Virus record (IMG/VR): IMGVR_UViG_3300036766_000194
Span: 186,001-250,000 of that record
Direction: 5' to 3' (one strand)
Length of the DNA: 64,000 nt
Position numbers and translations under genes: made by a program. Within the stretch, counting starts at the first letter, position 1. Each line of letters starts with the position of its first letter. Under the pieces are notes generated by a model. That model was not told the DNA's origin and searched no databases. It worked only from the letters and a program-made list of their open reading frames with translations. Shown here one piece after another: positions 1,746 to 56,055 of the stretch.

Positions 1746-1811
1746 TATAAGAGTTTGAGCAGGGCAGACAAAGCCTTGCTGCTGGAGGGAAGTCAGCTTT
1801 TCTAAGAAAAC

Positions 1812-4719: not shown

Positions 4720-5253
4720 TTACGTCACATCCCCTTTCAACAGATTGTTGGATTTTAGACCTTGAATCTTTGCTCTAGCAGATTGCGCGGCGCGGCGTTC
4801 TTGCGTCCAAGATTCTAGAGGATAGGTTTTCTTGAACTTGTAAGTCTTTCCCAAATTCCAGGGAATACTCCCCAGTTTAGGTCCTGTCTTTTTGCAGGAC
4901 TTGAGTCTGCGTGCCACCCACGCAGTCCGTTGCTTCGCTCGGGTTTCCTCACTCGCCTTGACGCCCTTACGATTATTCCGTCCACCCTCAGCCTGATTGT
5001 ACTCGGCCAACGTCCCCAACCAATTGATGAAACGAATTTCCAGGAAGTCCAATTCCTCAAGGGAGACCGCTCTCGCTATCTCTTTAATAGCAAAACTTTC
5101 CACTCCATACTTGCGGATCGCTTTATGCAGGACAGCTTGGCCTCCGCCATTGGCTGTGCAAACGTGATCCCGCCAGCGCGTAGCGAGGTCAAAGGTTGTC
5201 TGACCGACATAACGCTTTCCATTGGCAAGATTTTCTATGAGATAAATAACCAT
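4720..5253 (-). CDS. GIY-YIG homing endonuclease with NUMOD3
   Basis: VIYLIENLANGKRYVGQT...RWRDH; YNQAEGG; SEETRAK. Confidence 0.9.
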   Translation of the reverse strand: MVIYLIENLANGKRYVGQTTFDLATRWRDHVCTANGGGQAVLHKAIRKYGVESFAIKEIARAVSLEELDFLEIRFINWLGTLAEYNQAEGGRNNRKGVKASEETRAKQRTAWVARRLKSCKKTGPKLGSIPWNLGKTYKFKKTYPLESWTQERRAAQSARAKIQGLKSNNLLKGDVT

Positions 5254-5798: not shown

Positions 5799-8700
5799 CT
5801 ATGTGCTGTACATTTGTTCTGCGGCCCAACTCTCAAAACGCATAGCAGGATAACTATCAGGTCCAGGAGTTTCCCCGCGCATGGCCCAACTAAATCTTTT
5901 ACCACTATGATCGGGGTCTAAATCGGGGAATACTTTCTTTGCTTCGGTCAAGTTAGGGAACATTTGATACCCGTGTCCGTTAGGTGTAATTTCTCCATCC
6001 TTAACGCCGACCACTTGAACAGCCATAGTGTCCCGGCTATAGCCCCTTGTTTCAAGGTCATTTAACCAATTTGGAGCAGCCCTTTTCCCTCCAGCAGCAA
6101 GGCTTTGTCTGCCGCTGAAGTTACTTGGGGCGGCGGAGATTAGAAAAGCTGACTTCCAACAAGCCTTCTTGCCGAACGGAACGCCAGCCTTATCGAATAC
6201 GTCTTGAAGATACTCGATTCCAACCTCTTTAGTTCCAAGCCTTGCTGCTGCCTGGGTCTTATCACGCCCTGGCTTTTCTCCAACGATCAACACCTGTGTG
6301 GAGCGGGTGACGCTTCCATGGGCAACAGCACCTAGATTCACCAATTTCTTGGTGATCTCATCGCGCTTTTCCGGAAACACCCCGGTAATACAAAAGGTTA
6401 TACCGGATAGAATTTGTTTAGGAGCTTCACCACTCTGGTCCTCCGAAGCGGGAGCATGTGGACTGAGCTTGCTCTTACGGCCAGCAATGACATCAGACAT
6501 TTGCTTCAAGTCGCCCACCATCTGAGAGCGCGAATACTTTGCATCGTTTAGTTTCGTGACAATCAGAGCCAGATTGTCACCCGTGTATTCCTCGGCCTTA
6601 GCGAAATCGCTCTTTTGGAAATCGTAGAAAAGTTTCCCCTGTGTTTGTCCCACAACACCAATGGCGCGAATAACACTCTCATCATCAGCAATGTTGGGAT
6701 ATGCGATAGCACCCTTACCATACCACAACATGCGATCCCCAACGAGGCTAAGTAGATCGGAGCGTGAGAAGTTATAAATACGCTTAGTCCAAACATCCTT
6801 CATGCCCGGAGTGCCCACAGAAACGTTGGCATCCGCAAGAGGCTCCCAATGATTACGAGGAGGAGCGTTTTCCCACATACCGTCGGAGAGTTGTCCCATT
6901 ATCTCCCCATACCACAACCAAACCTGTGTTTTGTTTTCGAAATGAATTTGTCCATGTCCATAGTACTCGTACCTTTTCGTAGACGAAAATTTGTGGTAAC
7001 GCCGATACTGAGCTTCCCAGTCAGGAAGTTCCATAAGACTATTCATACCTTCAGTATCTGTGAAATAAGAAGGATCTTGTCCAGGATTCTGTAATAACTG
7101 TTCAAACGCAGAGATAAGATCTTCCTTAGAAATAAAAGAATAATATCCTTCTGCCGCAGCCGCAGCTACATATCTAGGTTCTGACTCAAACACGTCCGCA
7201 AATTCTTGTAATGTTTTAGGAGCGATTTTTAATGGGGCTACTCTAATTGTACCCGCGCCTCCATACCCCCCTTCCCAAAAAATGGCGATGAAGTTAGCAG
7301 GCATCTTTTCAAGAATATCCAAAGATTTACTTATAAGATTCGGAGTCCCATACCAAGTTAATTGTGTTAAGTTAGGATAGTCTTGATCACTATCACCCTC
7401 ATCAGCTGTGAGTTTATTTGAACTAGTTAAAGGCTTTCCATGACGATCCCAAGGACCAGGATTATCCGCGTGCTCTCCGGGTGAAGTATCTCTATCAACT
7501 ATTTCATCAAACCCCTTGTTGCAAGAGTGACAATAGTATTTGTTAGGCAGATTATGACTCGGGTCTTCCAAATAAATAGGACTATGACCGCAAAGAGGAC
7601 ATTGTGAGTTTACAAGTTGACCACCGCTAATATCTGCTTCAGACACGGCCATAAAGTTAGAAAAATTTCCCGTATTACCACACCCTTGACAGACGTCTAT
7701 GTAAGATCCGTCTTGAGGAAGAACCTGTATCTGATCACTACCGCAGTTAGTACAATGCTTACCGCGTTTGGCGGATTCTTTATCCTCAGAAGTTATCATC
7801 AATTCGTCTGCGTCTTCAAGAATACCACCGGAATCGTGTACTAATTCCTCAATCTTACCTTTGTAGCTACGAGGGATAGTCAAGGTGTCACCTTCCCATT
7901 CTACATAACGTCCATATCTACCCATAACTGCGTTATAAGCCTTTTCACGCTCAGGTTCTGGTTCTATACGTCCTTCGCCAGCGGAAGTAACTGGACGCCC
8001 GTGACGGCGATTATACTCATCTTTATTTCGTTTTAGAGCTTCTTGTAGCTCAGGATCTTTGGGTGTTTCAGAATCGTCAAGTTGTTTCCCTAGATCAGCG
8101 CGTAGTTTTTCTAACTCTTCTTCATTACCACTTGTCTTATTTCTACTTTCTTCTTGTTGCTGTCTAGAAACAATCCAAAGAACTATTTGAGAAAGTGTTA
8201 TATCAGGCATCGCCGAAAGCTCTTCTTCCGTCCAGATTCCGCCTCCTCCTTCCTTGATAAAACGAATAGCTTCTTCACGAGGAACGTTAAAACCTAATTC
8301 TTTTTGCCACCATCTCACTGCATAATAGGCGATGAAAGGTTGAGATAGATCACTTAGACATTTCTTGGGCAATTGGTCATATTCTCCACCGTGAACACCC
8401 CAATTAGAACCCTCTGCTCCGTGCTTAACAGGAAGAATTTCAGGAGCAACAGTGCGTTGGGGTTGCTGTTGTTGCATTTGCCCTGGCTGAACGGTACGGA
8501 GAGAAGGCATCTTAGATTTATCTTGTAACTCTTGTTTAGCAGGATCTAACACTTGAACGGGACTCCCGCTCGTGTTAGGCTGCTGATTAGCATAGGGGTC
8601 CGTTGCGGACTGCTTTTCTTCTACAGCAGCTAAAGTAAGAGATGATGCTTTAGGTTCAGAAACTACTTCATCCTTACGTTTCTTTCGTAGAACATTCATT

Positions 8701-9893: not shown

Positions 9894-10576
9894 GTTTGAG
9901 CCTTCTTATGAGGATTCGGCATTGGGTATTTATCTAGATTACGCAATCTCGATTCACGAAGTTTAGCGCGGGTTTCAAGAGTGTGCGTTTTCCCAAAGAA
10001 ATGATTCTTTTCACCTTTCACTGAATCACGTTGTTTATTACAAGATTCTTGACTACGGGTTAGTCCTATATGAGAATCGCGAAGTTTATGTAAAGTTTCC
10101 TCACTAGCTTTTTTACCAAGACGACCATTATGGATAGCTTTTAGTCCTTCAGGAGTATGGTTAGGATGACTTCCTGTCATCTTTTTTGTGAAATTTTCAC
10201 GGATTTCTGATAGTGTCCACATTTTTCTAGAAGCAGTCGCGATCTTCTCTTTTGTTTTTGAAGTGTGAGGTCCCGTGAAACCTTCTCCGCCACGACAAAT
10301 ATTATAACCGATGTCGGGATGCTGAGATTTCAAACTTTTTATGAGCAACTTCTCGTACTCGCAGATTTCTCGATTAGTTTGACCTTCAAAAAGAGGGAAA
10401 ATGTGAAAATGCTCAGGACCGTATTTGCGGATAGCCTTATAAAGATGGGAACGCAAAGACACGTAGTGTTTTGCGTCGTAAAATTTCTGCTTCAGGTATC
10501 GGGTTAAGCAGGACCCTGTAGTCTTACCGATGTAGATTTTCCAAGTTACATCACAAACAATTAGGTATACAAACAC
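9890..10576 (-). CDS. GIY-YIG homing endonuclease with NUMOD3 repeats
   Basis: VYLIVCDVTWKIYIGKT; GYNICRGGEG; HTSKTKEKI, SEETLHKL, HTLETRAKL. Confidence 0.9.
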   Translation of the reverse strand: MFVYLIVCDVTWKIYIGKTTGSCLTRYLKQKFYDAKHYVSLRSHLYKAIRKYGPEHFHIFPLFEGQTNREICEYEKLLIKSLKSQHPDIGYNICRGGEGFTGPHTSKTKEKIATASRKMWTLSEIRENFTKKMTGSHPNHTPEGLKAIHNGRLGKKASEETLHKLRDSHIGLTRSQESCNKQRDSVKGEKNHFFGKTHTLETRAKLRESRLRNLDKYPMPNPHKKAQT

Positions 10577-14948: not shown

Positions 14949-15458
14949 TTAGAGCAAGCTCGCAACGCCAAGCCAAGGCTCGGTTGCGGTTGGAATGTGT
15001 GTGCATACGCCGACAGCAGGGTTTCCTGAGAGAGTACCCTTACGAGCACTCGAGGTATACTTGCCGATATTAGTGCTAGTGGTTCCGCCGCAATAAACAT
15101 ATGCTCCTACAACGAAAGTTGCAGAGGCATCGTAGGCTTCGGAATCAACGATTCCTTGCCAAAATGCGCGAACAACAGGGGCTTTCTTCGAACCCGCAGG
15201 TCCGATTGCGCCAGCGAACTCACCCGGACCGTTGAGCAGTGTTGCATAGGGCACTTGTGCCGCTGCCGTATCTGCATCGCACGGAACCGCGACTACGCCG
15301 CGCCCTGCAGTTGCAGAAGTTTTAAGGGCAACGATAATTCCACCCTTGTAACCTGCAGCCGAAAGAACAGCCTGGTCAGTTCCTGGATCGCCAGTCAGTG
15401 TAACATCCGGAACAGTAGTTCCGTCGTTCTGACCATAATAGATCAGTTTAAGTGACAT
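14949..15458 (-). CDS. Capsid decoration/stabilising protein
   Basis: Directly upstream of the MCP; start moved to MSLKLIYYG at 15458. Confidence 0.7.
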   Translation of the reverse strand: MSLKLIYYGQNDGTTVPDVTLTGDPGTDQAVLSAAGYKGGIIVALKTSATAGRGVVAVPCDADTAAAQVPYATLLNGPGEFAGAIGPAGSKKAPVVRAFWQGIVDSEAYDASATFVVGAYVYCGGTTSTNIGKYTSSARKGTLSGNPAVGVCTHIPTATEPWLGVASLL

Positions 15459-15610
15459 ATTTTTGGTTCTCCAATGTAGCTTTTGAATTTTGTATTTATC
15501 CCAGTCTAGCGGGTTGGAGACCCGGTAAGACTTTAGGATGAATACAATGACTACATTCATTATGAAAAAGTTAGTAAAGAAAGCATTAAACTAGCGAACT
15601 CCTAAACATT

Positions 15611-16216
15611 ATGTCCTTAGTGTATCTAATACATTGCACGCTTTCTAAAAAACCTTATATTGGGCAAACTATTCAATCTCTAAAAGATAGGTGGAAAGGG
15701 CACTGCTCCGATGCCCGAGCAGGGTCAAAAACTCATTTAGCTAATGCTATTCGCAAGTATGGAGCAAATGCATTTGAATTGTCCGTAGTATGTGAGGGTG
15801 AATTCACACAGCAAGAATTAGATAATCTAGAAAAACTCTGGATCATAGTGTTAAATGCACATGAAACGGTGGGAGGATATAATCAAACTTGGGGAGGAAC
15901 TAGTAATGCAGGATATTGGCATAGGGGCAAAAAGCGTTCTCCAAAAACCTGTGAAAAAATCAGAAAAGCTAAATTAGGAAACAAAAATCCGATGTTTGGG
16001 AAAAAGAATCCAAAAGGCTCTTTTTCAGCAACTAATAATCCTATGAAAGGAAAACGTAAATCTAAGGCATGGAAACAAAAAGTAAGCAAAATCATGTCAC
16101 ATCCAAGAACTCTTGAACATTACCAGGCTGTTCTATTAGGTAGAAGATCAAAAGGTCAGCACATCAAAAAAGAAGTTTGTAAAAAATATCAAATTTCTTA
16201 TCTAGACAAATACTAA
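15611..16216 (+). CDS. GIY-YIG homing endonuclease with NUMOD3, antisense to the head operon
   Basis: LVYLIHCTLSKKPYIGQT...RWKGH; GYNQTWGG; SPKTCEKI; NPMFGK. Confidence 0.9.
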   Translation: MSLVYLIHCTLSKKPYIGQTIQSLKDRWKGHCSDARAGSKTHLANAIRKYGANAFELSVVCEGEFTQQELDNLEKLWIIVLNAHETVGGYNQTWGGTSNAGYWHRGKKRSPKTCEKIRKAKLGNKNPMFGKKNPKGSFSATNNPMKGKRKSKAWKQKVSKIMSHPRTLEHYQAVLLGRRSKGQHIKKEVCKKYQISYLDKY

Positions 16217-16259
16217 CTTTTCTCCAATCCCTACAGTAGAGTATAATTGGAGGAACGTC

Positions 16260-16523
16260 ATGCCAACCGGATGCAAATGTGGTGAAAATAAAACTGCTGA
16301 TGTTGGAACTCTTTGGTATGTAGAAGGAAGAAACGCTTATTCAGCCGACGCTTCAGATCTTCAACACTCTGGAGAACGAGGAAAGAAATGCCCTGGATGT
16401 AACGGACCCATGCCACCAGTACGGCTGAACTTTCTTCCAAGATCTCAAGGGGGAGAAAACATAACCCACTGGATAGGTCGATGTCTTAACTGTAAAGCCA
16501 ATATAACTATTTGGAATGACTAA
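16260..16523 (+). CDS. Zn-ribbon protein; copy of the C-terminal domain of 55090..56055
   Basis: Identical to the C-terminus of 55090..56055 from GCKCGENKTA onward; own SD (GGAGG) and promoter-like CAGTAGAGTATAAT. Confidence 0.75.
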   Translation: MPTGCKCGENKTADVGTLWYVEGRNAYSADASDLQHSGERGKKCPGCNGPMPPVRLNFLPRSQGGENITHWIGRCLNCKANITIWND

Positions 16524-16525
16524 AA
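16269..16525 (+). repeat. 257-bp inverted repeat, copy A (partner 55088..55344)
   Basis: Compared base by base with the reverse complement of 55088..55344; no mismatch found. Confidence 0.95.
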
Positions 16526-16587
16526 TTGTGTATGACCAGATGGGTAAACTCGAGGACGCAATTCTTAAAGCTGAGGAGAATAGGTGA
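16516..16587 (+). CDS. 23-aa micro-ORF MTKIVYDQMGKLEDAILKAEENR
   Basis: ATG overlaps the previous stop; IVYDQMGK comes from a 26-bp match to 55467..55492. Confidence 0.35.
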   Translation: MTKIVYDQMGKLEDAILKAEENR

Positions 16588-16651
16588 TTCATATCTTCAA
16601 GACTTTCGACCAACGTCGGGAACGCCGTATTAAAACAAAAAGGAGCCGCTA

Positions 16652-16870
16652 ATGGACACTAATCGGCAGGCAATTCTTTTTCATCTCAAAAAGGGAGCAT
16701 CTCTAAAGATCGCTCTAAATAATCCTCAGGTGGCTTTTGTTTTCTATCCTGATGAAAAGTACGTCCCAGTGAACGCTGACACGGCTGCTGCTTTAATTGA
16801 AGAAGGGAATCTCATTGAAGTAAATCCTGGAGTTTTTGATCTTCTCAAGATTGCTTCAAACATAGTATAA
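16652..16870 (+). CDS. Hypothetical protein
   Basis: AAAGGAG SD. Confidence 0.7.
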   Translation: MDTNRQAILFHLKKGASLKIALNNPQVAFVFYPDEKYVPVNADTAAALIEEGNLIEVNPGVFDLLKIASNIV

Positions 16871-17196
16871 TGTTTTGGATACTTCTATTAGTTCAAAATG
16901 TAATACTTCCTCTACTCCTCGCCTATGGTGTGTTGAAAATGGACCAATATTGGCATGGGAAGCAGGAATTCAACCGCGCCTATGCGCGTGCTGTCAGTTT
17001 AGGTGTGGATAGTCGTAAACACCCAGAAAAAGTCACCTTGGAAGCTCTATTCATGGCCAGTGAAGCAGAGTTAGAATACGCAACAGAGAATATTGGGAGA
17101 GATGTAAACCAAATCTTCAAAGAATTGGAAGAAGAAATTTCTGACGAGTTAATGGAACACGTATTTCGTGGAAGATCAAAATCCTCGGGTGCTTAA
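16870..17196 (+). CDS. Hypothetical protein with an N-terminal TM helix
   Basis: TAATG coupling; hydrophobic N-terminus. Confidence 0.7.
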   Translation: MFWILLLVQNVILPLLLAYGVLKMDQYWHGKQEFNRAYARAVSLGVDSRKHPEKVTLEALFMASEAELEYATENIGRDVNQIFKELEEEISDELMEHVFRGRSKSSGA

Positions 17197-17366
17197 TGTG
17201 ACCGTCAGACTATGACTGTTATTACGTGGTGGGGATATTTTCTTCATTAGAAAAAGCACGGGAGTTTGCTGCTGAAAAGAATTCGGCCTACTCTGGTATA
17301 CACGAATATGTTTTAGATGAAGTTTTAGGTGAACCCGGTGAAGAAGTCTATCACTCCGTCGTATAA
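17196..17366 (+). pseudogene. Small phage protein with TGA at codon 2 (pseudogene or readthrough)
   Basis: ATG TGA CCG TCA GAC TAT...; downstream frame SDYDCYYVVGIFSSLEKAREF...IHEYVLDE is open to TAA at 17366. Confidence 0.5.
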
Positions 17367-17370
17367 AACG

Positions 17371-17399
17371 AAACACCCCGCCTTTTGAGCGGGGTGTTT
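17371..17399. terminator. Bidirectional terminator between the scaffold gene and the antisense island
   Basis: Perfect 11-bp stem AAACACCCCGC/GCGGGGTGTTT. Confidence 0.85.
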
Positions 17400-17438
17400 A
17401 AACTGAAGATGCCATCTTCAGGGTTGTATTAAACTCTG

Positions 17439-18845
17439 TTACTCGTCGCCAAAGAGCAAGTCAGCAAGAGATCCCTCAGTAGGTGCCCCGGCTGTAACCT
17501 TTAACTTCTTGATGGTTTCCTTCTTAGCAGCTGCCTTAGGAGTTTCCATGACAGGCTGTTGGTCTTCCTTAATGCGCTTCTGTCCGCTGTCTTCGGGCTT
17601 CTGATCTTCAATCAATTCTGCCCAAATGTCACCAGTGTGGTCGGATTCGCTATCGCGATCATCACCCTTGAGTTCAGATTCAAAGTGATTTGCTGCCTCA
17701 CCAGTAAAGGAGGGAACTACATCCACCCCGTCCACTGAAGTAGCTTCCTTGTAAGAGGCGAATAAGGTTGCCATCGAATCGTCACCTTCTACAGAAGCAA
17801 ACATCCCGGACATTTCATTGGAATTGTTGTCCATTGATGCTGCCATCTCACCTTCTTCAGAAGGCCCGAAGAAATCTTCTCCGCCTCCCATTTCATCCAT
17901 ACCCTCTTCCATCTCTTCGCCTTCATTTGCCAAGGAATCAACCTTGTCTTCAGGCTGAGAGAAAATAGAGTTGAGATCCAGTTCTTCCTGACCCTCTTCT
18001 AGAATAGTCTCTTCAATGTTTTGAATAGCCTGTTGTGCTTCTGCAATCTGCTCAGAAACCTGTTCTTTCTTTTCTTCTGTTAACATTGTTGCAGCTTCCT
18101 CTTCAGGAGCAGGTGCTGCCTCTTCTGTAGGTACCTCTTCAGCTGCTGGTGCTTCCTCAACTGGGGCTTCTTCAGCCTCCGGAGCGGCCTCAACAGGCGC
18201 AGCGTCTCCTTCATCAGCCTTCTTAGAAACTACATGTTCCTTGCAACCTACCTTACCGCATTCTGCACACTTGGAATCTGCCTTTTTTGCAGCGGCAGAA
18301 ACAGACTTCTGTTCTTTCTCACTGCCCTCACTCTTATCAACGGAGTCAGCGGGACGAGATTCCGACTTGCTTGCGTCCATTTCCTTTGGTTCAGAACCCT
18401 TGCGACCATCTTCGTACTTGTCAGGCTGAGGTCCTGCATCCTTACGATCGTCTGCAACCTTGCCAGCATTCTTGGCGTCACCCTTAACTTCTGTGGTTAC
18501 GGCACTCTTTTCCTTATTCAATTCGGATTCGGGAGACATAAGGTCATTAAGATCCTTCTTGTGTACCGACTCATACGTCTCAGCAAATTTGGACCAGTGA
18601 GCATTGATAGCGGTCTGACGTAGAGCCGCCTTCAATACTTTAGTGGACGCGCTCAATAGCGCAGACGCCAGGTGCTGTTGCACCTCAGCGGGAGCTTTAG
18701 GTAGCATGGTCTTGGCGATGGTCCAAGCACAGACTGTGCGTACACGAGCCTCTTTGCTTGCTGCCGTTACCACTTCTTGTGCCTGCTTTGCAGCGGCAAT
18801 ACGCTCTTTTATGGGGGACTTTTCGTTAAGATTCGCCATGTTCAC
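17439..18845 (-). CDS. Prohead scaffold/core protein
   Basis: Very acidic and low-complexity; lies between the protease and decoration/MCP genes. Confidence 0.7.
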   Translation of the reverse strand: MNMANLNEKSPIKERIAAAKQAQEVVTAASKEARVRTVCAWTIAKTMLPKAPAEVQQHLASALLSASTKVLKAALRQTAINAHWSKFAETYESVHKKDLNDLMSPESELNKEKSAVTTEVKGDAKNAGKVADDRKDAGPQPDKYEDGRKGSEPKEMDASKSESRPADSVDKSEGSEKEQKSVSAAAKKADSKCAECGKVGCKEHVVSKKADEGDAAPVEAAPEAEEAPVEEAPAAEEVPTEEAAPAPEEEAATMLTEEKKEQVSEQIAEAQQAIQNIEETILEEGQEELDLNSIFSQPEDKVDSLANEGEEMEEGMDEMGGGEDFFGPSEEGEMAASMDNNSNEMSGMFASVEGDDSMATLFASYKEATSVDGVDVVPSFTGEAANHFESELKGDDRDSESDHTGDIWAELIEDQKPEDSGQKRIKEDQQPVMETPKAAAKKETIKKLKVTAGAPTEGSLADLLFGDE

Positions 18846-20807: not shown

Positions 20808-21918
20808 ACTCTGACCAAAGTGCTTCCATATCAACACCTTCCATTCGGGCCATTTCCTTCATACGAGGATCAGACATGAAACGTAATTTGACATCTTCTT
20901 CCTGCTCTGATATGAAATCCAACCAATTATCAGTAGCAACCTTTTCCATGGCTTGCTTAGATCTTAACCAGTGATTTATAAGATTTTGTTCACGACTGTC
21001 TAATTCTACCCAGGGACGGAAGAACAGCATTGAAGTTGGTTTGCCCGTTACTCCTAGCAATTTGCAACGACCTTTTGGAGTTAAAGCATTCCATGCCTGT
21101 TCTATGTTCTCACTAGAAATCTTTTTACTGGTTCCCCCACTGATTGTATCCTGTTTAATTTCTTCTTTAACATCTTCATCGAGATGACGACGCATATCGT
21201 TACGTGGCGGGAGTTTGGTAGGAGTCTCGTGGAATTCAACTTCTGAATCCCGAGGCTTAGAAGACGGAGTCGTGTTGAACTTATGTGCTACAGGAGGCTT
21301 ACCACGCTCACGACGTTTACGATTAAACAGCCAGGGTTCATCCTTAAAGCGACTGGGCATCTTATCAAAATGTCTCAATTGTCGAGTAACATTGGGAGCA
21401 AAGGTTTGAACATTTCGCGCAGCCGTCTTGCCCTTTAATCCTTGTAAGAATCCGTCTAATTCGAACAGTTCTCCCTGTTGAACGGGGATACGTTTCTCAA
21501 ATAATGTAAACCCCCAGTTGGTAACTTCTAACCTAAGACCAGGAAGATTTTTATTATTATAATGACTATACCCATCACATCGGTGGTATCTTCCACGGTG
21601 GTCTGAAGCGGTGGGAATCTTATACCAACCCATTTCTTCTATAGAATCTTGACTAGACCCATATCTTACATTTTCAGGTTCTGTACCTTTTTGAGCGTAA
21701 GGGAATCTGTCAGTAGATTCAGATGATGCGCGAGGATCCTGCGCTGCTTCAGGTCTGTTCAATTCTATACTGGTCTGATCTAGGGCTTGCTTTTTCTTCT
21801 TTTCATCTTCTTCACAAATACACTTAGCGGTAGGTTTTAGGCAAAAAGCGCAAGTATTATGCTTCCAAGATGTGCTTGTTTTATGTGTGGGAGCTACCGT
21901 TTGTTTTTTACTAACCAT
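20764..21918 (-). CDS. Mosaic hypothetical virion-associated protein
   Basis: ORF track; modules separated by KQA/KTAA/ISS/KVA motifs. Confidence 0.75.
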   Translation of the reverse strand: MVSKKQTVAPTHKTSTSWKHNTCAFCLKPTAKCICEEDEKKKKQALDQTSIELNRPEAAQDPRASSESTDRFPYAQKGTEPENVRYGSSQDSIEEMGWYKIPTASDHRGRYHRCDGYSHYNNKNLPGLRLEVTNWGFTLFEKRIPVQQGELFELDGFLQGLKGKTAARNVQTFAPNVTRQLRHFDKMPSRFKDEPWLFNRKRRERGKPPVAHKFNTTPSSKPRDSEVEFHETPTKLPPRNDMRRHLDEDVKEEIKQDTISGGTSKKISSENIEQAWNALTPKGRCKLLGVTGKPTSMLFFRPWVELDSREQNLINHWLRSKQAMEKVATDNWLDFISEQEEDVKLRFMSDPRMKEMARMEGVDMEALWSESKDEYLKTFHDPLP

Positions 21919-22741: not shown

Positions 22742-25387
22742 TTATTCAGCTTCTGCTATGTTCAAACCGAAGAACTTAACAGATGCTTCCTTAGATGATT
22801 CTTTCTTTGCTGCCTTGGTAGCTTCTTCCTCAGCTTCTTCAGCCATGAGCATCTTGTTAAATGCTTTTTTAGCATCTTCAAAAAGAAGCATTGCGCTGTA
22901 GACGGCTTCAACTGAGTTACGGATAGCTGCCACATCATTCACTTTAGTTAAGGGTTTAAGTGATAGATACATCTTCTTGAGATCTTCCTCAGCATCTTCA
23001 CAAGCCTTCAACGCTTTGGTAACGGTCATCTCAGCTGCTAATTTCTCGGGCAGGACTGTTGCTGGACGCTTAATCCCTGTATTATCGTCACGCATTTTGT
23101 GCGCTTCGGCAACTTCAGGAACACGCTTACCTCCGTCACAAATTTCGGAGGTCTCGTCATTAGAAGTCCAAGCTCCCCCTATCGCAGCGGAAGCGAATTT
23201 CTTTACGAATAAAGATGCGTTCTTTTCAAGAAGATAAGCCGCACGATGAGGAGTATAACCTTCACCCTTCATATGCCATGCTAACGCCCAGGGATTATCA
23301 ATCTCTGGGTGCTTTTTCATCTTCTTAACAGTACCTTCCCATCCTTCAGGAGCAACCGCATTCTTATTAACAGAAGCTGCTTTTTCTTCCTGTGAAGCTG
23401 CATATTCCTTCTCACAAGCTCCACACATATCAGAACCCGCCATAGCCTTGTTACCACATTCACATTTTACAGGCTGACCATGACTCTTTGCTGACTTTTG
23501 TTCAACTGGACGATTCTTTAGAACCGAAGAAAGCTGTTCAATCCAAAGTACCGCAGACTTATCATCCATAAATTCGGGAACGCCCGCTAGAGCCTTAATG
23601 GCTGCTCCTATAGCCTTAGTTCCTAGGGATTGAGGATCCAGTCCACCTGTTCCAGACATATCTTCTGTAGGTAAACCTGATTCGGACACATCTTCAACAG
23701 GGAGGTCGTCTTCTACTGGGATATCGTCTTCAAGGATATCCTCAGGTGGTTCAACCATGTCTATTTCTTTATCTGCACGCTTTCTCACAAAAGCACCTCT
23801 CTTATTTAATCTCTTCTGACCTTCTTCAGAACGAAAGAAATCTTGAAGCGTTTCGGGACCATGACCTTCACTTACTATATCATTCGCTCCGCCACCACCA
23901 TAGGCTTCCCAACTACCATCTTCTTTTACTACCACAGCTTCTAAACCAGGGGTTTCATCGCCGTGTACGGGTCCCCAATAAACAGTTCCCATTTCCCTAC
24001 CTATTGGAGCATTGGTGTCTGCTTCAAAATCCAACGAGTTAAGAATCTGTTCATAATTGAGTGACATAGCTCTCTTTTTCTTAGCTATAACTGGAACGGC
24101 GATAGGAACGGTAGATTTAGGAGCAGATGAATTCTTGATAGGTTCTGATGCTGGAGAAGGAGATTCTGTTTCTGCTTTCTTTTTACGTTTTGGCATACAC
24201 TTCTTACAATATTCTTCATTACCAGAATGAAGTTTACCGCATAGCTCACACTTTGTACGATCATCATCCGAGGAGGACCCTACAATAGATTCACCCATTG
24301 GTCCTAAGTATCCTGCAATAGAGTCGGCTAAGTCAATTTCTCCCTTAGTACGAGCAAGTCTTTCTATACTCTTTAGGGCATTAGGATTTTGTTCTGCGTA
24401 ACTTTCTCCGTGGAGAATATCCTTAAGTTGTTCTTCAATAGCCCAACCATATCTAGAACTACAAATATCAATAAAATCTTGCATGTCATATCTAGTGAGA
24501 GAACCAGTAAACATGTCTTCTGCTTCAATCTCAGGTTCTTCATCTGCTACGGATGAGGTAACAACCCCACCAACTTCTCCCGGATCCACAGCTTCAACTG
24601 GGGCACTGAATGCAGAACTTGGACGAGGAATAGACGTAGGAGGAGTCTTTCCCACTAAAGGACTAGATTCAACAGTAAAACGGGCTTCAAACCAAGAATC
24701 TTTAGGCCAAGCATTCCAATGATTGCTAGCAGCTACAACAAATGCCCTCAATCCTACGTTATTCAAAGCCTTTACAACTTTATCGGCAAACTTACGTTCG
24801 TCCATACCGTGAGTATAGAAATACCCATGTTTTGCTATTAAAACTCTCTGTTGTGGGCTGTAACTTACATCAGCAATACCAGACAAAGCATCTCTTGCCT
24901 GTAGCTTTATCTTGGTGTTCATATCGGTTGCGGTTTTAACAGAAGCTAAAGCAGACCCTGGGCCTGTAATGGGCTTGGGTGCTGAATCTAATTTGAATTG
25001 GTCTACCTCTCTTGGGTCAAATTCATCAGTTTCTTCGAATCCATGTTTCATAAACCAACTAAAATCTATAGGTTGGCGACGCAACATCCCGTTAGCAAAG
25101 TCTACGTCAACTTCTTTACTTCCTAGACTATTACGAACCAAAACACCCTGAATACCACTTATAGATATTCCAGATTTATCAACAATAACAGTAACCTCAT
25201 CTAAGATCTTTTTAGGTTCTTCAAAATCATTAATCTCAGGCCAATTAGTAACCTTCATGTCAGCTATCAGAGGCTTAGACCCGTCTTCAAAAGGTTCTAC
25301 TCCCGTCACCCCATACCAGTCTGTCTTATCAAAAGGACGAAGTGCTTTGGAAGAAACCTTATTCCGTTCGTTGAAAAGTTTACTCAT
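22742..25387 (-). CDS. 881-aa mosaic virion-associated protein
   Basis: ORF track; short domains in low-complexity linkers; APEGWEGTVKKMKKHPEIDNPWALAW module. Confidence 0.8.
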   Translation of the reverse strand: MSKLFNERNKVSSKALRPFDKTDWYGVTGVEPFEDGSKPLIADMKVTNWPEINDFEEPKKILDEVTVIVDKSGISISGIQGVLVRNSLGSKEVDVDFANGMLRRQPIDFSWFMKHGFEETDEFDPREVDQFKLDSAPKPITGPGSALASVKTATDMNTKIKLQARDALSGIADVSYSPQQRVLIAKHGYFYTHGMDERKFADKVVKALNNVGLRAFVVAASNHWNAWPKDSWFEARFTVESSPLVGKTPPTSIPRPSSAFSAPVEAVDPGEVGGVVTSSVADEEPEIEAEDMFTGSLTRYDMQDFIDICSSRYGWAIEEQLKDILHGESYAEQNPNALKSIERLARTKGEIDLADSIAGYLGPMGESIVGSSSDDDRTKCELCGKLHSGNEEYCKKCMPKRKKKAETESPSPASEPIKNSSAPKSTVPIAVPVIAKKKRAMSLNYEQILNSLDFEADTNAPIGREMGTVYWGPVHGDETPGLEAVVVKEDGSWEAYGGGGANDIVSEGHGPETLQDFFRSEEGQKRLNKRGAFVRKRADKEIDMVEPPEDILEDDIPVEDDLPVEDVSESGLPTEDMSGTGGLDPQSLGTKAIGAAIKALAGVPEFMDDKSAVLWIEQLSSVLKNRPVEQKSAKSHGQPVKCECGNKAMAGSDMCGACEKEYAASQEEKAASVNKNAVAPEGWEGTVKKMKKHPEIDNPWALAWHMKGEGYTPHRAAYLLEKNASLFVKKFASAAIGGAWTSNDETSEICDGGKRVPEVAEAHKMRDDNTGIKRPATVLPEKLAAEMTVTKALKACEDAEEDLKKMYLSLKPLTKVNDVAAIRNSVEAVYSAMLLFEDAKKAFNKMLMAEEAEEEATKAAKKESSKEASVKFFGLNIAEAE

Positions 25388-25836
25388 AGTGTTGTATCCG
25401 TTAAGGACGGTACTACGCTTTGTGCTCTAAGACTCTGAATGGCCTGGCCTATACGAGAAGAAGGTCCTAAGGAAGCCATAACAGAATACCATATTTGAGC
25501 AGCCTTTGCAGGGTCAGTAGTTACAACTTGTAGCGGACCTTGAACAGGAACGGGTTGATTGGGTCCTGGTGAAGGAGGCAAAGCTGTCATGAATTGAGCA
25601 GTGTAATTTTGCAACTGAGTTGTGATACCAACTAAAAGTTGAGTCGTTGGAAATTGAAAAGAAAACGTACCAGGGGGATTAGGGTCTGTAAAAGTACCCG
25701 CAATATTAACTTGAGGATCACCAAAAGCTAATATCTTAGATTTATCCGTCGTATCATTCACGTCCCCAACGAACGAAGCCTGTAGAACGACGCTTATAAT
25801 ACCGTTTTGTTGAGTTATGACCGGATGAATTTTCAT
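25384..25836 (-). CDS. Hypothetical structural protein
   Basis: Lies between the sheath and tube region; ATGA coupling. Confidence 0.7.
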   Translation of the reverse strand: MKIHPVITQQNGIISVVLQASFVGDVNDTTDKSKILAFGDPQVNIAGTFTDPNPPGTFSFQFPTTQLLVGITTQLQNYTAQFMTALPPSPGPNQPVPVQGPLQVVTTDPAKAAQIWYSVMASLGPSSRIGQAIQSLRAQSVVPSLTDTTL

Positions 25837-48974: not shown

Positions 48975-49911
48975 GATCAGCGGGAGGGAGTTCCCACGGG
49001 AGCGTCTTTACTCCCGGATAATAATAATTATCTGTTGGTCCATACATATCCAGAGTATAAGCGCCCCGTTGATTAAGAAGTTCCTTACCGATTTCGGTCA
49101 ACAGCCAGGGAGAGTTCACTCCGTCTTTCTTTTCAATGACACCCTCACGACGCATGTGGGTAAGAAGAGAAGAATCGTGTAAGGAGGGAAAATACGCCTT
49201 GAGTTCTTTGCTTATACAACCATCCGGGCGCGTGGCAATGGCTTGGAGAATTCCGTGACCTTGACTGCCAGCACGATACAACTTGGAAACGGTCCTGTTA
49301 CGGGGTGTAGAAAATTCCTGAGTCGTGTGGTCCAGCTTTTTGAAGAAATTCATATTTTGGACATCGTCCATGTCATTATAACTTGTAAACTGGTGGCGGA
49401 TATTCTCAAGCTCGGAGTGAGTATCGGAGAAGTTGGCATAACCATTAGCGAAGCTACCCCCGATCATGTTGAGTTTATTGGAAATGGAATTCTTGTCCTT
49501 AACCCTGTTCAACTGAAGAACTTCTTTTCCCAGTTGTGTCAGCTGCATACCCAAGTCATATCTGCGCTTTTGTTCCAGAGTTTGGATATTCGGCATTGCG
49601 CGTTTCCTCCGTTTGTATTCTACTGGATTAGACGCTAAACGGCTATTTCCCATATGCTCTATAGGTTTAGCCTGACCACTTACATAGATTTTAAGTGATT
49701 CTGAATCGGATCCTTCGGCTAAAATTCTACGCAAGTTACTAAGGAATTGCCAACTTCCGTCAGGATACACAAACATCTTACCTGTATCTCCCTGCTTACG
49801 CCACATAGAAAATTCATCAGGGCTTGCTATTCTATCCCATCCGTGTTCCATCAACAGGATATCAGCATCCCTGTCCATAGCTCCTTTGTGTAAAAACCAA
49901 GCCTTAGCCAT
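48931..49911 (-). CDS. Mosaic protein starting with leader MAKAWFLHKGA
   Basis: Three modules separated by RLAS, KRA and YRA motifs; last module winged-HTH-like. Confidence 0.8.
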   Translation of the reverse strand: MAKAWFLHKGAMDRDADILLMEHGWDRIASPDEFSMWRKQGDTGKMFVYPDGSWQFLSNLRRILAEGSDSESLKIYVSGQAKPIEHMGNSRLASNPVEYKRRKRAMPNIQTLEQKRRYDLGMQLTQLGKEVLQLNRVKDKNSISNKLNMIGGSFANGYANFSDTHSELENIRHQFTSYNDMDDVQNMNFFKKLDHTTQEFSTPRNRTVSKLYRAGSQGHGILQAIATRPDGCISKELKAYFPSLHDSSLLTHMRREGVIEKKDGVNSPWLLTEIGKELLNQRGAYTLDMYGPTDNYYYPGVKTLPWELPPADHAQFVADNGIKRFT

Positions 49912-49958
49912 TATTGACCTCTATAGTGGAGTGGAAATTAACTCAACTGAGGAAGAAT
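49862..49958. repeat. 97-bp direct repeat, copy 1 (promoter motif + SD + first 17 codons)
   Basis: Identical to 50491..50587 (offset 629). Confidence 0.95.
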
Positions 49959-49973
49959 GATTTGTAGTCCAAC

Positions 49974-50237
49974 TTACGAAATCCCGTTTCTAGAATTTCG
50001 TAATCCCAAGTAACTAATAATATCACCATTCACCAAGCTCCGTGTATAAGGAGCAAGTTGAACTTCGTTCTGACCGTATTCCCAAACCAAATGGAGAATT
50101 CGAGAGTCAAACTCATCATGATCACGACTCTGAATCCCACGAAGAAGTTCGACATCCTTATCTGGAATTTCGACTATGCGAAAGTAGTTCAAACTATCCC
50201 CTTGATACATTCCTCGAAGTTCAACTGGAATTCTCAT
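49974..50237 (-). CDS. Hypothetical protein
   Basis: AAGGAG SD. Confidence 0.7.
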   Translation of the reverse strand: MRIPVELRGMYQGDSLNYFRIVEIPDKDVELLRGIQSRDHDEFDSRILHLVWEYGQNEVQLAPYTRSLVNGDIISYLGLRNSRNGIS

Positions 50238-50248
50238 TCAAAGTCTCC

Positions 50249-50374
50249 TTGATAAGGAGTCGCAGCACGTTCATCAAGAATTCGTCGGTACGCCAAATTC
50301 CAATCAGTATGCTTGATAAGGCCTCGCAGCATTTTCATCAAGAATTCGTCGGTACGCCAAATTCCAATCAGTAT
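50249..50374. repeat. Tandem duplication with 64-bp period (41-bp perfect core)
   Basis: 50270..50310 = 50334..50374. Confidence 0.95.
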
Positions 50375-50540
50375 ACTGACCAAGTTCCTCGAAAGTAGTG
50401 ACGGAACCGTCATCACCGACCCAACGAGTCGGCATACGACCAACAGAAGCAGCAACATATCCGTCGTTGCGACGCCAGACATAATAAACGTCAGCATCCC
50501 TGTCCATAGCTCCTTTGTGTAAAAACCAAGCCTTAGCCAT
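50304..50540 (-). CDS. 78-aa protein with the same MAKAWFLHKGAMDRDAD leader
   Basis: Starts inside repeat copy 2; its stop is created by the 64-bp duplication. Confidence 0.7.
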   Translation of the reverse strand: MAKAWFLHKGAMDRDADVYYVWRRNDGYVAASVGRMPTRWVGDDGSVTTFEELGQYTDWNLAYRRILDENAARPYQAY

Positions 50541-50587
50541 TATTGACCTCTATAGTGGAGTGGAAATTAACTCAACTGAGGAAGAAT
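50491..50587. repeat. 97-bp direct repeat, copy 2
   Basis: Identical to 49862..49958. Confidence 0.95.
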
Positions 50588-55087: not shown

Positions 55088-55344
55088 TTTTAGTCATTCC
55101 AAATAGTTATATTGGCTTTACAGTTAAGACATCGACCTATCCAGTGGGTTATGTTTTCTCCCCCTTGAGATCTTGGAAGAAAGTTCAGCCGTACTGGTGG
55201 CATGGGTCCGTTACATCCAGGGCATTTCTTTCCTCGTTCTCCAGAGTGTTGAAGATCTGAAGCGTCGGCTGAATAAGCGTTTCTTCCTTCTACATACCAA
55301 AGAGTTCCAACATCAGCAGTTTTATTTTCACCACATTTGCATCC
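55088..55344 (-). repeat. 257-bp inverted repeat, copy B (partner 16269..16525)
   Basis: Exact reverse complement of 16269..16525. Confidence 0.95.
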
Positions 55345-56055
55345 TGGAGGACATTTGCAATTTGCGCCGCATTTGCAGTTGGGACCGCAATGACAGCTTG
55401 AACTGGCCTGAATCTTCTGTAGCAATCTACTTTTCCACTGTTGTTCCACGGGAAGTACTCCTGTCGGTTTACCCATCTGGTCATACACAATTACATATAA
55501 CGGTTTGGGTTGGGTTTTCAATTGTCTATTTCTATACATCTGGATGACCCGCTGAGCATCATTTATAGTCGGCTTGATCGGTATTGCTTTAGCAAACTCT
55601 ATTTTACGGACCTGTGGAGCACGTTGTATATATGTTGCCGAGGTTATCACCCGTTCTTGTGTCTCTTGAACAAACGTCTGGGGAAGTTTAAACAACCCCC
55701 TATAAGTTTGTAGAGTGGGATCGTGTCCTACGTCAGGTGTACTTGCCTGGGTTGAATTTTCCATAGACAAACCAGCAAAACAATTTAAAGCACGCGCATA
55801 AATGTCTGTGATAACATCTTTGTCATAGCGCAAACTAAGCATAAAAGTAGCGACTTCGTCAAGAAGAACTCCTAGAGCTTCTTGCGTAACCGTAACCATA
55901 TTCTTTGGTTCGTCCACAACAAGTGGGAATTTTAAGGAGAATCTTGTGAAGTTGGGTATTCCTAAATCTAATTCTATAACGACACAAGGGGTAGCATCAC
56001 GGATAATCGTGATTTCTAATTCTCCAGCAACAGGCGAAATGTAGGAAATCTTCAT
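55090..56055 (-). CDS. Mosaic protein with a metallothionein-like Cys cluster and a C-terminal Zn ribbon
   Basis: CHCGPNCKCGANCKCPPGCKCG; CPGCNG...CLNCK. Confidence 0.75.
   Translation of the reverse strand: MKISYISPVAGELEITIIRDATPCVVIELDLGIPNFTRFSLKFPLVVDEPKNMVTVTQEALGVLLDEVATFMLSLRYDKDVITDIYARALNCFAGLSMENSTQASTPDVGHDPTLQTYRGLFKLPQTFVQETQERVITSATYIQRAPQVRKIEFAKAIPIKPTINDAQRVIQMYRNRQLKTQPKPLYVIVYDQMGKPTGVLPVEQQWKSRLLQKIQASSSCHCGPNCKCGANCKCPPGCKCGENKTADVGTLWYVEGRNAYSADASDLQHSGERGKKCPGCNGPMPPVRLNFLPRSQGGENITHWIGRCLNCKANITIWND

Follow-up and report, generated by a model that had tools for sequence, protein, structure and literature searches.

A permuted two-piece copy of a baseplate-module gene fragment, and a second smaller case, in intergenic gaps of a jumbo phage genome

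Templated insertions made by MMBIR/FoSTeS or by synthesis-dependent MMEJ (SD-MMEJ) have been described mainly in yeast, flies and human. In T4-type phages, recombination between promoter cassettes on either side of a segment gives rise to PeSL mini-circles, which contain complete ORFs (Arbiol et al. 2010, PMC2839356; PMC4122927). Free-standing GIY-YIG homing endonucleases, such as the Seg family of T4, have collateral effects (review PMC2988022), and in phage T6 SegB drives microhomology-linked amplification and rearrangement beside its own gene (PMC13096335). Ku is encoded by mycobacteriophages of the Corndog/Omega type (PMC4351075). The locus described here, a copy assembled from two pieces of one phage gene in a gap between two conserved genes, shares features with each of these systems.

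The DNA analyzed (64,000 nucleotides, hereafter the window) corresponds to bases 186001-250000 of an IMG/VR virus record of 299,875 bp in total; positions below are those of the window unless marked as genome positions. The two ends of the record are identical over 127 nt, which indicates a circularly closed assembly, and an assembly k-mer of 127 was inferred from this terminal overlap. The source is a double-stranded-DNA jumbo phage of ~300 kb from sediment metagenomes. A BLAST search with the copy locus and the donor locus against 50,697 deposited phage records gave zero nucleotide matches. The genome is rich in tandem repeats. It includes two related arrays of ~33-nt tandem repeats at a distance of 79 kb from each other (genome 42481-42877 and 121439-121819), and near both of them stands a 90-nt cassette of promoter plus first codons whose two occurrences are 99% identical (genome 40383-40472 and 124093-124182). 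In two separate genes, stretches of 130 nt that are 95% identical (genome 60148-60277 and 100725-100854) code for a Hint/intein-like N-terminal motif, which suggests two related inteins.

The copy and its donor comprise the following features:

16269-16525, plus strand: piece A of the copy, 257 nt, an exact copy of the donor 3' end through 2 nt beyond the stop codon
16524-16549, plus strand: piece B' of the copy, 26 nt, an exact copy of the donor codons for (V)IVYDQMGK, joined to A via AA
55090-56055, minus strand: donor gene of the baseplate module, coding for 321 aa, with a 411-aa gene on one side and a 212-aa gene on the other
55088-55344, minus strand: donor piece A, the C-terminal domain, the stop codon and 2 nt
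55345-55466, minus strand: donor spacer of 122 nt between B and A, absent from the copy
55467-55492, minus strand: donor piece B, located by repeat finding and the exact-match scan

Repeat finding, a whole-genome exact-match scan and genome BLAST agreed that 16269-16525 is the reverse complement of 55088-55344 (257 nt, 100% identity) and that 16524-16549 is the reverse complement of 55467-55492 (26 nt, 100% identity). The pieces share two nucleotides, the AA at 16524-16525. Read along the donor gene, B comes first and A follows after 122 nt; the copy has them as A-B, i.e. permuted. The donor unit from B to A spans 405 nt, of which 281 are present in the copy, the 122-nt spacer (55345-55466) being the missing part. 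The initial annotation had reported a 26-bp match to 55492-55467 directly after the 257-bp copy, a donor order B...A that appears as A-B, and a junction through AA microhomology, and the coordinates bear out all of this. BLAST and the exact-match scan located the 26-mer at exactly two sites in the 299,875-bp genome, and it does not belong to a dispersed repeat family; the chance expectation for such a match is ~6e5/4^26, roughly 1e-10. At the outer junctions, the visible flanks showed no clean microhomology to the donor: the left flank ends in ..CCAACC, against ..CCTCCA in the donor, and on the right side a single extra T stands ahead of a shared CGA.

The donor gene itself is intact, so the event was one of copying and not of cut-and-paste. 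In the Logan contigs of sequencing run X1, the path from the end of A through B' into the downstream sequence lies on a 5.1-kb contig at 33x, which equals the flank depth. The left flank, the A-B' path and both donor flanks are each found on long contigs at 33-34x in this run, while piece A alone reaches 65.5x, i.e. two copies. Run X3, which comes from another study, contains the identical junction from A to B' on a 12.5-kb contig at 11x, and the junction also occurs on two IMG/VR contigs of metagenome 3300032173. Support by reads, on which the initial annotation had made its junction depend, was thus found at full flank depth, on long contigs, in runs of different studies and in another IMG assembly. 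Searches for an empty site or another allele, with the right and left flanks in viral contigs and with the right flank in metagenome contigs, found only the two contigs of 3300032173.

Of the genes next to the donor, the 411-aa gene has a weak baseplate match and the 212-aa gene a baseplate-wedge/tail-fibre-network match, and the gene order 411-321-212 is also found in a distant relative (L008). The 47 homologues of the donor protein share a conserved core that runs through ..KPLYVIVYDQMGxPTGVLPVxQQWKxxLL.., followed by variable C-termini that differ greatly in length. Three of them (P0002-P0004; 56-59% identity) end in an A-type domain, W..CPxC..THWxGxCxxCGA..T.FND. Because B is part of the conserved core and the A-type domain is native in homologues, the copy at 16.3 kb is the derived one. 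The initial annotation had named this gene as the source and set the direction from donor to copy; homologues that natively carry both B (YVIVYDQMG) and the A-type domain agree with it. Piece A begins within the third and final TGCAAATG unit of a Cys-rich linker and extends to 2 nt past the stop codon, so that the entire conserved domain was copied. This linker between core and C-terminal domain (55345-55420, minus strand) is a metallothionein-like Cys run (CHCGPNCKCGANCKCPPGCKCG) that the three TGCAAATG units encode; the linkers of the donor homologues are quite different from it. Pfam and PHROGs searches gave no match for the donor protein or for the protein encoded by the copy (p87, below). 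The donor unit 55088-55492 is intragenic. Apart from AA, its two ends have nothing in common, and neither repeats nor promoter cassettes flank it. The sequence after B' (LEDAILKAEENR) was also considered as the tail of a short-form donor allele, and this was rejected because short homologues end differently.

Two ORFs were created by the copy:

16260-16523, plus strand: p87, a chimeric 87-aa ORF made of M-P-T from the recipient and 84 residues of the donor C-terminal Cys-rich/zinc-ribbon-like domain
16516-16587, plus strand: a 23-aa ORF that reads B' in the donor frame, with its ATG inside piece A

Piece A is fused in frame behind ATG-CCA-ACC of the recipient. Aligned to the C-termini of P0002-P0004, p87 retains the conserved pattern given above, and its domain is predicted to be Cys-rich and zinc-ribbon-like. 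An AlphaFold (AF2) model of p87 reached a mean pLDDT of 69.7, i.e. moderate confidence, and a Foldseek search of this model against the PDB found nothing at E<=1e-3. A word-based homologue search with p87 recovered only p87 itself and no other small homologue. The second ORF reads MTKIVYDQMGKLEDAILKAEENR, and the donor reads ...YVIVYDQMGKPTG... The initial annotation had presented it as a coupled 23-aa ORF in which the B piece keeps its original frame (IVYDQMGK). The donor frame is indeed kept, but a coupled gene is not supported, the ATG being inherited from the donor and the ORF having no ribosome-binding site of its own. For these two reasons, and because the frame of B' would be retained by chance in 1 of 3 cases, the ORF was not counted as evidence of function; it is probably incidental.

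The copy sits between a conserved 203-aa gene (p203; 14949-15560, minus strand) and a conserved 468-aa gene (p468; 17439-18845, minus strand). In ~60 related contigs, p203 and p468 are either adjacent or separated by a GIY-YIG gene of varying lineage, and this variability marks the gap as a hyperplastic region and a homing-endonuclease hotspot. The small ORFs of the present gap were found in none of the ~60 relatives. The gap contains, in order, a GIY-YIG/NUMOD3 gene, a promoter-like/Shine-Dalgarno cassette, the copy, four small orphan ORFs and a bidirectional terminator. Two of these elements precede the copy:

15611-16216, plus strand: free-standing GIY-YIG/NUMOD3 homing endonuclease gene, 201 aa, identified with Pfam and PHROG
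16204-16259, plus strand: promoter-like element and Shine-Dalgarno cassette (..CAGTAGAGTATAAT..GGAGGAACG..), resident, supplying the ATG at 16260

The 201-aa endonuclease matched Pfam GIY-YIG (E=6e-11) and NUMOD3 (E=6e-6), both above the cut-offs, and a homing endonuclease PHROG (E=6e-27). The 300 kb contain only 5 GIY-YIG genes, and one of them lies 44 nt from the copy's ORF, counted from the end of the endonuclease gene to the ATG. This closeness could merely reflect that both endonuclease and junk DNA gather in a dispensable gap. Three of the five GIY-YIG genes are clustered in the window, within 11 kb of one another (4720-5253, minus strand; about 10325-10573, minus strand; 15611-16216, plus strand). 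The cassette at 16204-16259 has 78-88% matches at genome 91.7k, 92.0k and 33.2k, and the layout CAGTAGAATA-N5-GGAGGAACG-N2-8-ATG stands ahead of at least 7 genes, the Ku gene included (window 16204-16262; genome 33187, 33253, 87829, 91691, 92055 and 99372). With this family present elsewhere in the genome, the ATG at 16260 belongs to the recipient. The cassette with its CAGTAGAATA-like box is probably a phage-specific promoter combined with a strong ribosome site. A scan of 15400-17500 for sigma-70 promoters and terminators found none within the copy and only the bidirectional terminator near 17371-17399.

We also searched the genome for repair and recombination genes. A Ku homologue (Pfam Ku, 82 bits) is encoded at genome 87039-87833 (L076 4540-5334, minus strand) and an ATP-dependent DNA ligase (DNA_ligase_A_M, 43 bits) at genome 83858-84751 (L076 1359-2252, minus strand), the two genes being 2.3 kb apart; a RecA-like gene is located at 24963-25616. 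A search of five relatives detected no Ku in the portions of their genomes that are available; their records are 33-74% complete, which makes the correlation with Ku weak, and the association with Ku and ligase rests on one genome. The genome gave no PF21686 match for a LigD-type polymerase domain and no Pol-theta-like domain; a host enzyme could supply LigD-type polymerase activity. It likewise gave no RVT_1 match for a reverse transcriptase and no Resolvase or Phage_integrase match for serine or tyrosine recombinases. Models based on a DGR, a retro-copy, an invertase or an integrase were rejected, since these enzymes are absent and the repeats are 100% identical.

The copy is polymorphic in the population. 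A 150-nt in-frame deletion, which cuts p87 to 37 aa and removes the first Cys pair, is bounded by a short direct repeat:

16259-16265 and 16409-16415, plus strand: two CATGCCA heptamers, the bounds of the deletion allele (contig 3300032173_000512)

This allele is carried by contig 3300032173_000512, which runs from the endonuclease gene through A into B' and has one T>C change in its B' copy, and by one contig of run X3. In the latter run, the joint 16258->16409 was found at 8.5x alongside the full-length junction at 5.8x. Given these two alleles, the copy predates the split of the strains (about 99.5% identity), and it appears to be dispensable. A different arrangement was seen on contig 3300032173_000035, which leads from the donor gene through A and B' into the genes downstream of the gap, as expected from an inversion of 38.5 kb between the two A copies (16526-55087). 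The halves of this contig differ in their identity to the present genome (99.94-100% vs 99.2-99.5%). Either homologous recombination between the two 257-nt inverted copies produced a true isomer, or the repeat induced a misjoin; contigs built with k=31 do not discriminate between the present and the inverted arrangement. The present genome retains both ancestral adjacencies, p203-p468 and 411-321-212. In practice, a 257-nt exact inverted repeat of this kind can flip a 38.5-kb segment, or be misassembled as flipping it.

The initial annotation had advised looking for other permuted fragments in the full genome. We scanned the whole genome for composites, i.e. abutting exact matches whose partners lie <=600 nt apart. 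Outside two tandem-repeat arrays, exactly two strong composites were found, the copy described above and one more at 1763-1805. Both are located in the window and both are permuted (2/2), with no strong colinear composite outside the tandem-repeat arrays. The same scan of three related partial genomes (231, 187 and 170 kb) gave no such composite and almost no ectopic exact repeats. The second case consists of:

1763-1805, plus strand: second permuted copy, 1763-1791 (29 nt) and 1788-1805 (18 nt), in the intergenic spacer that separates genes of 205 aa and 295 aa
6085-6157, minus strand: donor of the second event, with piece 2 (6140-6157), a 26-nt spacer and piece 1 (6085-6113), a unit of 73 nt

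The pieces of the second copy overlap by 4 nt, GGAA, which ends an imperfect 8/11 match between the switch points. Its donor lies inside a 1364-aa BRCT-containing gene, 4.3 kb from the copy and in inverted orientation. There, piece 2 precedes piece 1 by 26 nt, hence the permuted order, and the donor ORF is intact. A search for the other allele of this event through its flank found nothing. The internal junctions of the two events thus carry AA and GGAA, and in both cases the templates lie close together in intact donor ORFs (122 nt and 26 nt apart).

Other ectopic copies were observed in the same genome. A third recent one, at 50261-50509, is ~100% identical over 249 nt to genome 93086-93334, in inverted orientation, and is fused via a shared stretch of 16-19 nt (..DRDAD..) to a 97-nt duplicate, yielding a 78-aa chimeric ORF. 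It is part of a larger layout at 49862-50587 (minus strand), where a 629-nt insert stands between the two units of a 97-nt exact direct repeat (the promoter of a 326-aa gene plus its first 17 codons); the insert starts with the inverted copy of the gene at 93 kb and also holds a 64-nt tandem repeat. Such an order of repeat, insert and repeat is what circle integration by homologous recombination would give. All three ectopic copies are sense-to-sense with local transcription, which with n=3 is possibly chance (1 in 8). A further 31 nt are repeated exactly, in direct orientation, at an unrelated site (21572-21602) and immediately next to the Ku gene (genome 87007-87037), and may be another short templated patch.

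Six features have to be explained: the pieces are permuted, they have one orientation, the spacer of 122 nt (or 26 nt) is absent, the overlaps measure 2-4 nt, the donors are intact, and the site is a break-prone gap. Templated break-repair synthesis with a microhomology-mediated switch would cover all six in one event, and we give this reading, by either of two routes, a probability of roughly 0.55. A double-strand break would have occurred in the gap between p203 and p468, where breaks are to be expected given that the gap is a homing-endonuclease hotspot in relatives, and would have been made by the neighbouring or an incoming endonuclease. For its repair, another copy of the genome would have served as template, with DNA synthesis priming at the baseplate gene. 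By route (a), one broken 3' end would copy A to just beyond the stop codon, dissociate, re-anneal 405 nt back via AA, copy 24-26 nt of B and return to the break. By route (b), each of the two 3' ends of the break would prime on a different strand of one opened donor region, at sites 122 nt from each other, and the ends would extend apart, one downstream through A and the other upstream through B, after which the new ends would pair via AA/TT and be sealed. Either route would account for the permuted order and common orientation of the pieces, for the loss of the 122-nt spacer and for a short microhomology at the junction. As judged from their sequences, the RecA-like protein, Ku and ATP-dependent ligase of the phage could plausibly provide strand invasion and microhomology end-joining in infected cells. 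The second patch at 1763-1805 (29+18 nt) would have been made by the same process on a smaller scale. We infer the break, the endonuclease that made it, the copying polymerase and the choice of route.

In sequence alone, a backward switch, copying across a transient tandem duplication and copying around a circle look alike. The initial annotation had inferred that a ~400-nt donor segment was circularised (or template-switched), then opened and inserted. Its bracketed alternative is the better reading; the opened circle is neither needed nor favoured. A circle would imply that ~405 nt of the baseplate gene, released by excision or produced by copying, were closed from the end of A to the start of B via AA, and were then either opened in the spacer, trimmed and inserted, or used as a rolling template from A into B. 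The permuted order is the expected product of such a molecule, and 405 bp is near the optimal length for closing a duplex ring. With Ku and a ligase among its genes, the phage could conceivably self-ligate a fragment, and T4-type phages have been shown to form mini-circles of about 400-1400 bp (PMC2839356). An opened ring should nevertheless deliver all 405 nt, and only 281 are present, with the 122-nt spacer lacking. The donor unit, unlike that of PeSL circles, is not flanked by repeats or promoter cassettes, the genome has neither a site-specific recombinase nor a reverse transcriptase, and the 73-nt unit of the sister event is too short to close as duplex DNA. No contig leads from the end of A through B into the donor spacer (..GGGTAAAC-CGACAGG..), a weak argument given that Logan consensus contigs drop rare variants. 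Overall, we consider a circle unlikely. The same A|B joint could have arisen in the donor itself by doubling of the 405-nt unit, with the joint stretch copied to the gap and the duplication later collapsed by homologous recombination. The many tandem repeats of the genome, together with the microhomology tandem amplification documented beside a homing endonuclease gene in phage T6 (PMC13096335), speak for this scenario. It is quite unlikely all the same: three events are required instead of one, an in-frame doubling of 405 nt would disrupt the baseplate protein, no trace was found at the donor in any data set, and the whole chain would have to recur for the 73-nt event.

Capture by ligation, in which Ku and ligase would join two physical fragments of a degraded genome copy into the break, by chance A and then B, has both enzymes encoded in its favour, and the overlaps of 2-4 nt fit NHEJ. 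Bacterial NHEJ captures DNA fragments into breaks, even two in tandem (PMC6379672), and the AA microhomology of 2 nt is minimal and suits ligation as well as priming. What makes this reading very unlikely is that fragments of 14-29 nt are implausibly small substrates, and that drawing two independent fragments of a 300-kb genome from a stretch of 405 nt (in the other event, of 73 nt), both times in matching orientation, would be a coincidence unless they came from one molecule. Another possibility starts from an inversion of 38.5 kb with a staggered break around A, which left a copy of A at each end and B' as templated filler at one joint; a later flip by homologous recombination between the A copies would have restored the gene order and kept A-B' in the gap. 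Inverted duplications at inversion breakpoints are a known product of staggered breaks, and contig 3300032173_000035 shows just the arrangement of donor gene, A, B' and gap-downstream genes that this scenario predicts. Both ancestral adjacencies are kept in the present genome, so two large events would be needed, and contig 000512 of the same sample runs from the endonuclease into A and B'. Contig 000035 itself may be a repeat-induced misjoin, the 257 nt being longer than the inferred k-mer of 127 and its halves differing in identity, and the 43-nt second event is not explicable in this way; we hold an initial inversion to be highly unlikely. The chance of an assembly or amplification artefact is close to nil. 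The data do stem from metagenome assembly, and the 257-nt exact repeat exceeds the inferred 127-nt k-mer, but the junction was found at flank depth on long contigs, in runs from different studies and in another IMG assembly, and a 26-nt piece cannot produce a graph misjoin.

The locus is a clean natural case in which a phage builds a new ORF, with a predicted promoter cassette, from a piece of its own structural gene; the case is confirmed by reads and polymorphic in the population. The footprint of two pieces, permuted order, missing spacer and overlaps of 2-4 nt points to repair synthesis with template switching and not to homologous or site-specific recombination. Its occurrence twice in one 64-kb window of a genome with Ku and ligase, and in none of three relatives, offers a lead on the plasticity of hyperplastic regions in jumbo phages. 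A bolder idea, which we regard as speculative and rather doubtful, is that this lineage routinely copies fragments of its own genes into variable gaps by phage-encoded break repair (RecA-like/Ku/ligase, or small circles), with breaks made by homing endonucleases and fragments landing behind cassettes of promoter, ribosome site and ATG as a form of gene birth. If so, structural-protein domains would become free-standing small proteins, and the permuted A-B order would be a diagnostic footprint.

Compared with the known systems, the events resemble MMBIR and SD-MMEJ in the multi-piece insertion, the nearby templates, the junction microhomology of 2-4 nt, the unchanged donor, the non-colinear pieces and the inferred break-prone site. 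They differ in being located in a phage genome, in having a template that is 38.5 kb (or 4.3 kb) off and inverted, in including one long piece (257 nt), and in that no Pol-theta-like or LigD polymerase domain was found here. As with PeSL, small segments move in hyperplastic regions, the size is ~400 bp, and the conserved promoter/Shine-Dalgarno cassette of the recipient, here a predicted one, ends up driving the newcomer. Unlike in PeSL, the donor unit is intragenic and lacks flanking repeats other than AA, and of its 405 nt only 281 reached the gap. The GIY-YIG/NUMOD3 gene in an intergenic gap between conserved genes, its variation in presence or absence and the microhomology rearrangement right alongside recall the Seg endonucleases, whereas what homing transfers from an allelic site is the endonuclease gene with its flanks, and not normally a fragment of a distant gene. 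End-joining by Ku and LigD is matched by the encoded Ku and ATP-dependent ligase and by overlaps of 2-4 nt; on the other hand, the genome has no LigD polymerase domain, and known phage Ku serves genome circularisation and not gene shuffling. The invertible segments Mu G and P1 C are similar in that the 3' end of a tail-apparatus gene is repeated in inverted orientation and that an alternative arrangement appears in one contig, but no invertase is present here, the identical repeats allow no protein switch, the segment is 38.5 kb long and the isomer is possibly a misassembly. The event is thus a microhomology-mediated multi-piece templated insertion, which is a known kind of event; what is unusual is that it is clean, that it recurs in one phage and that it produced a promoter-fused copy of a structural-protein domain.
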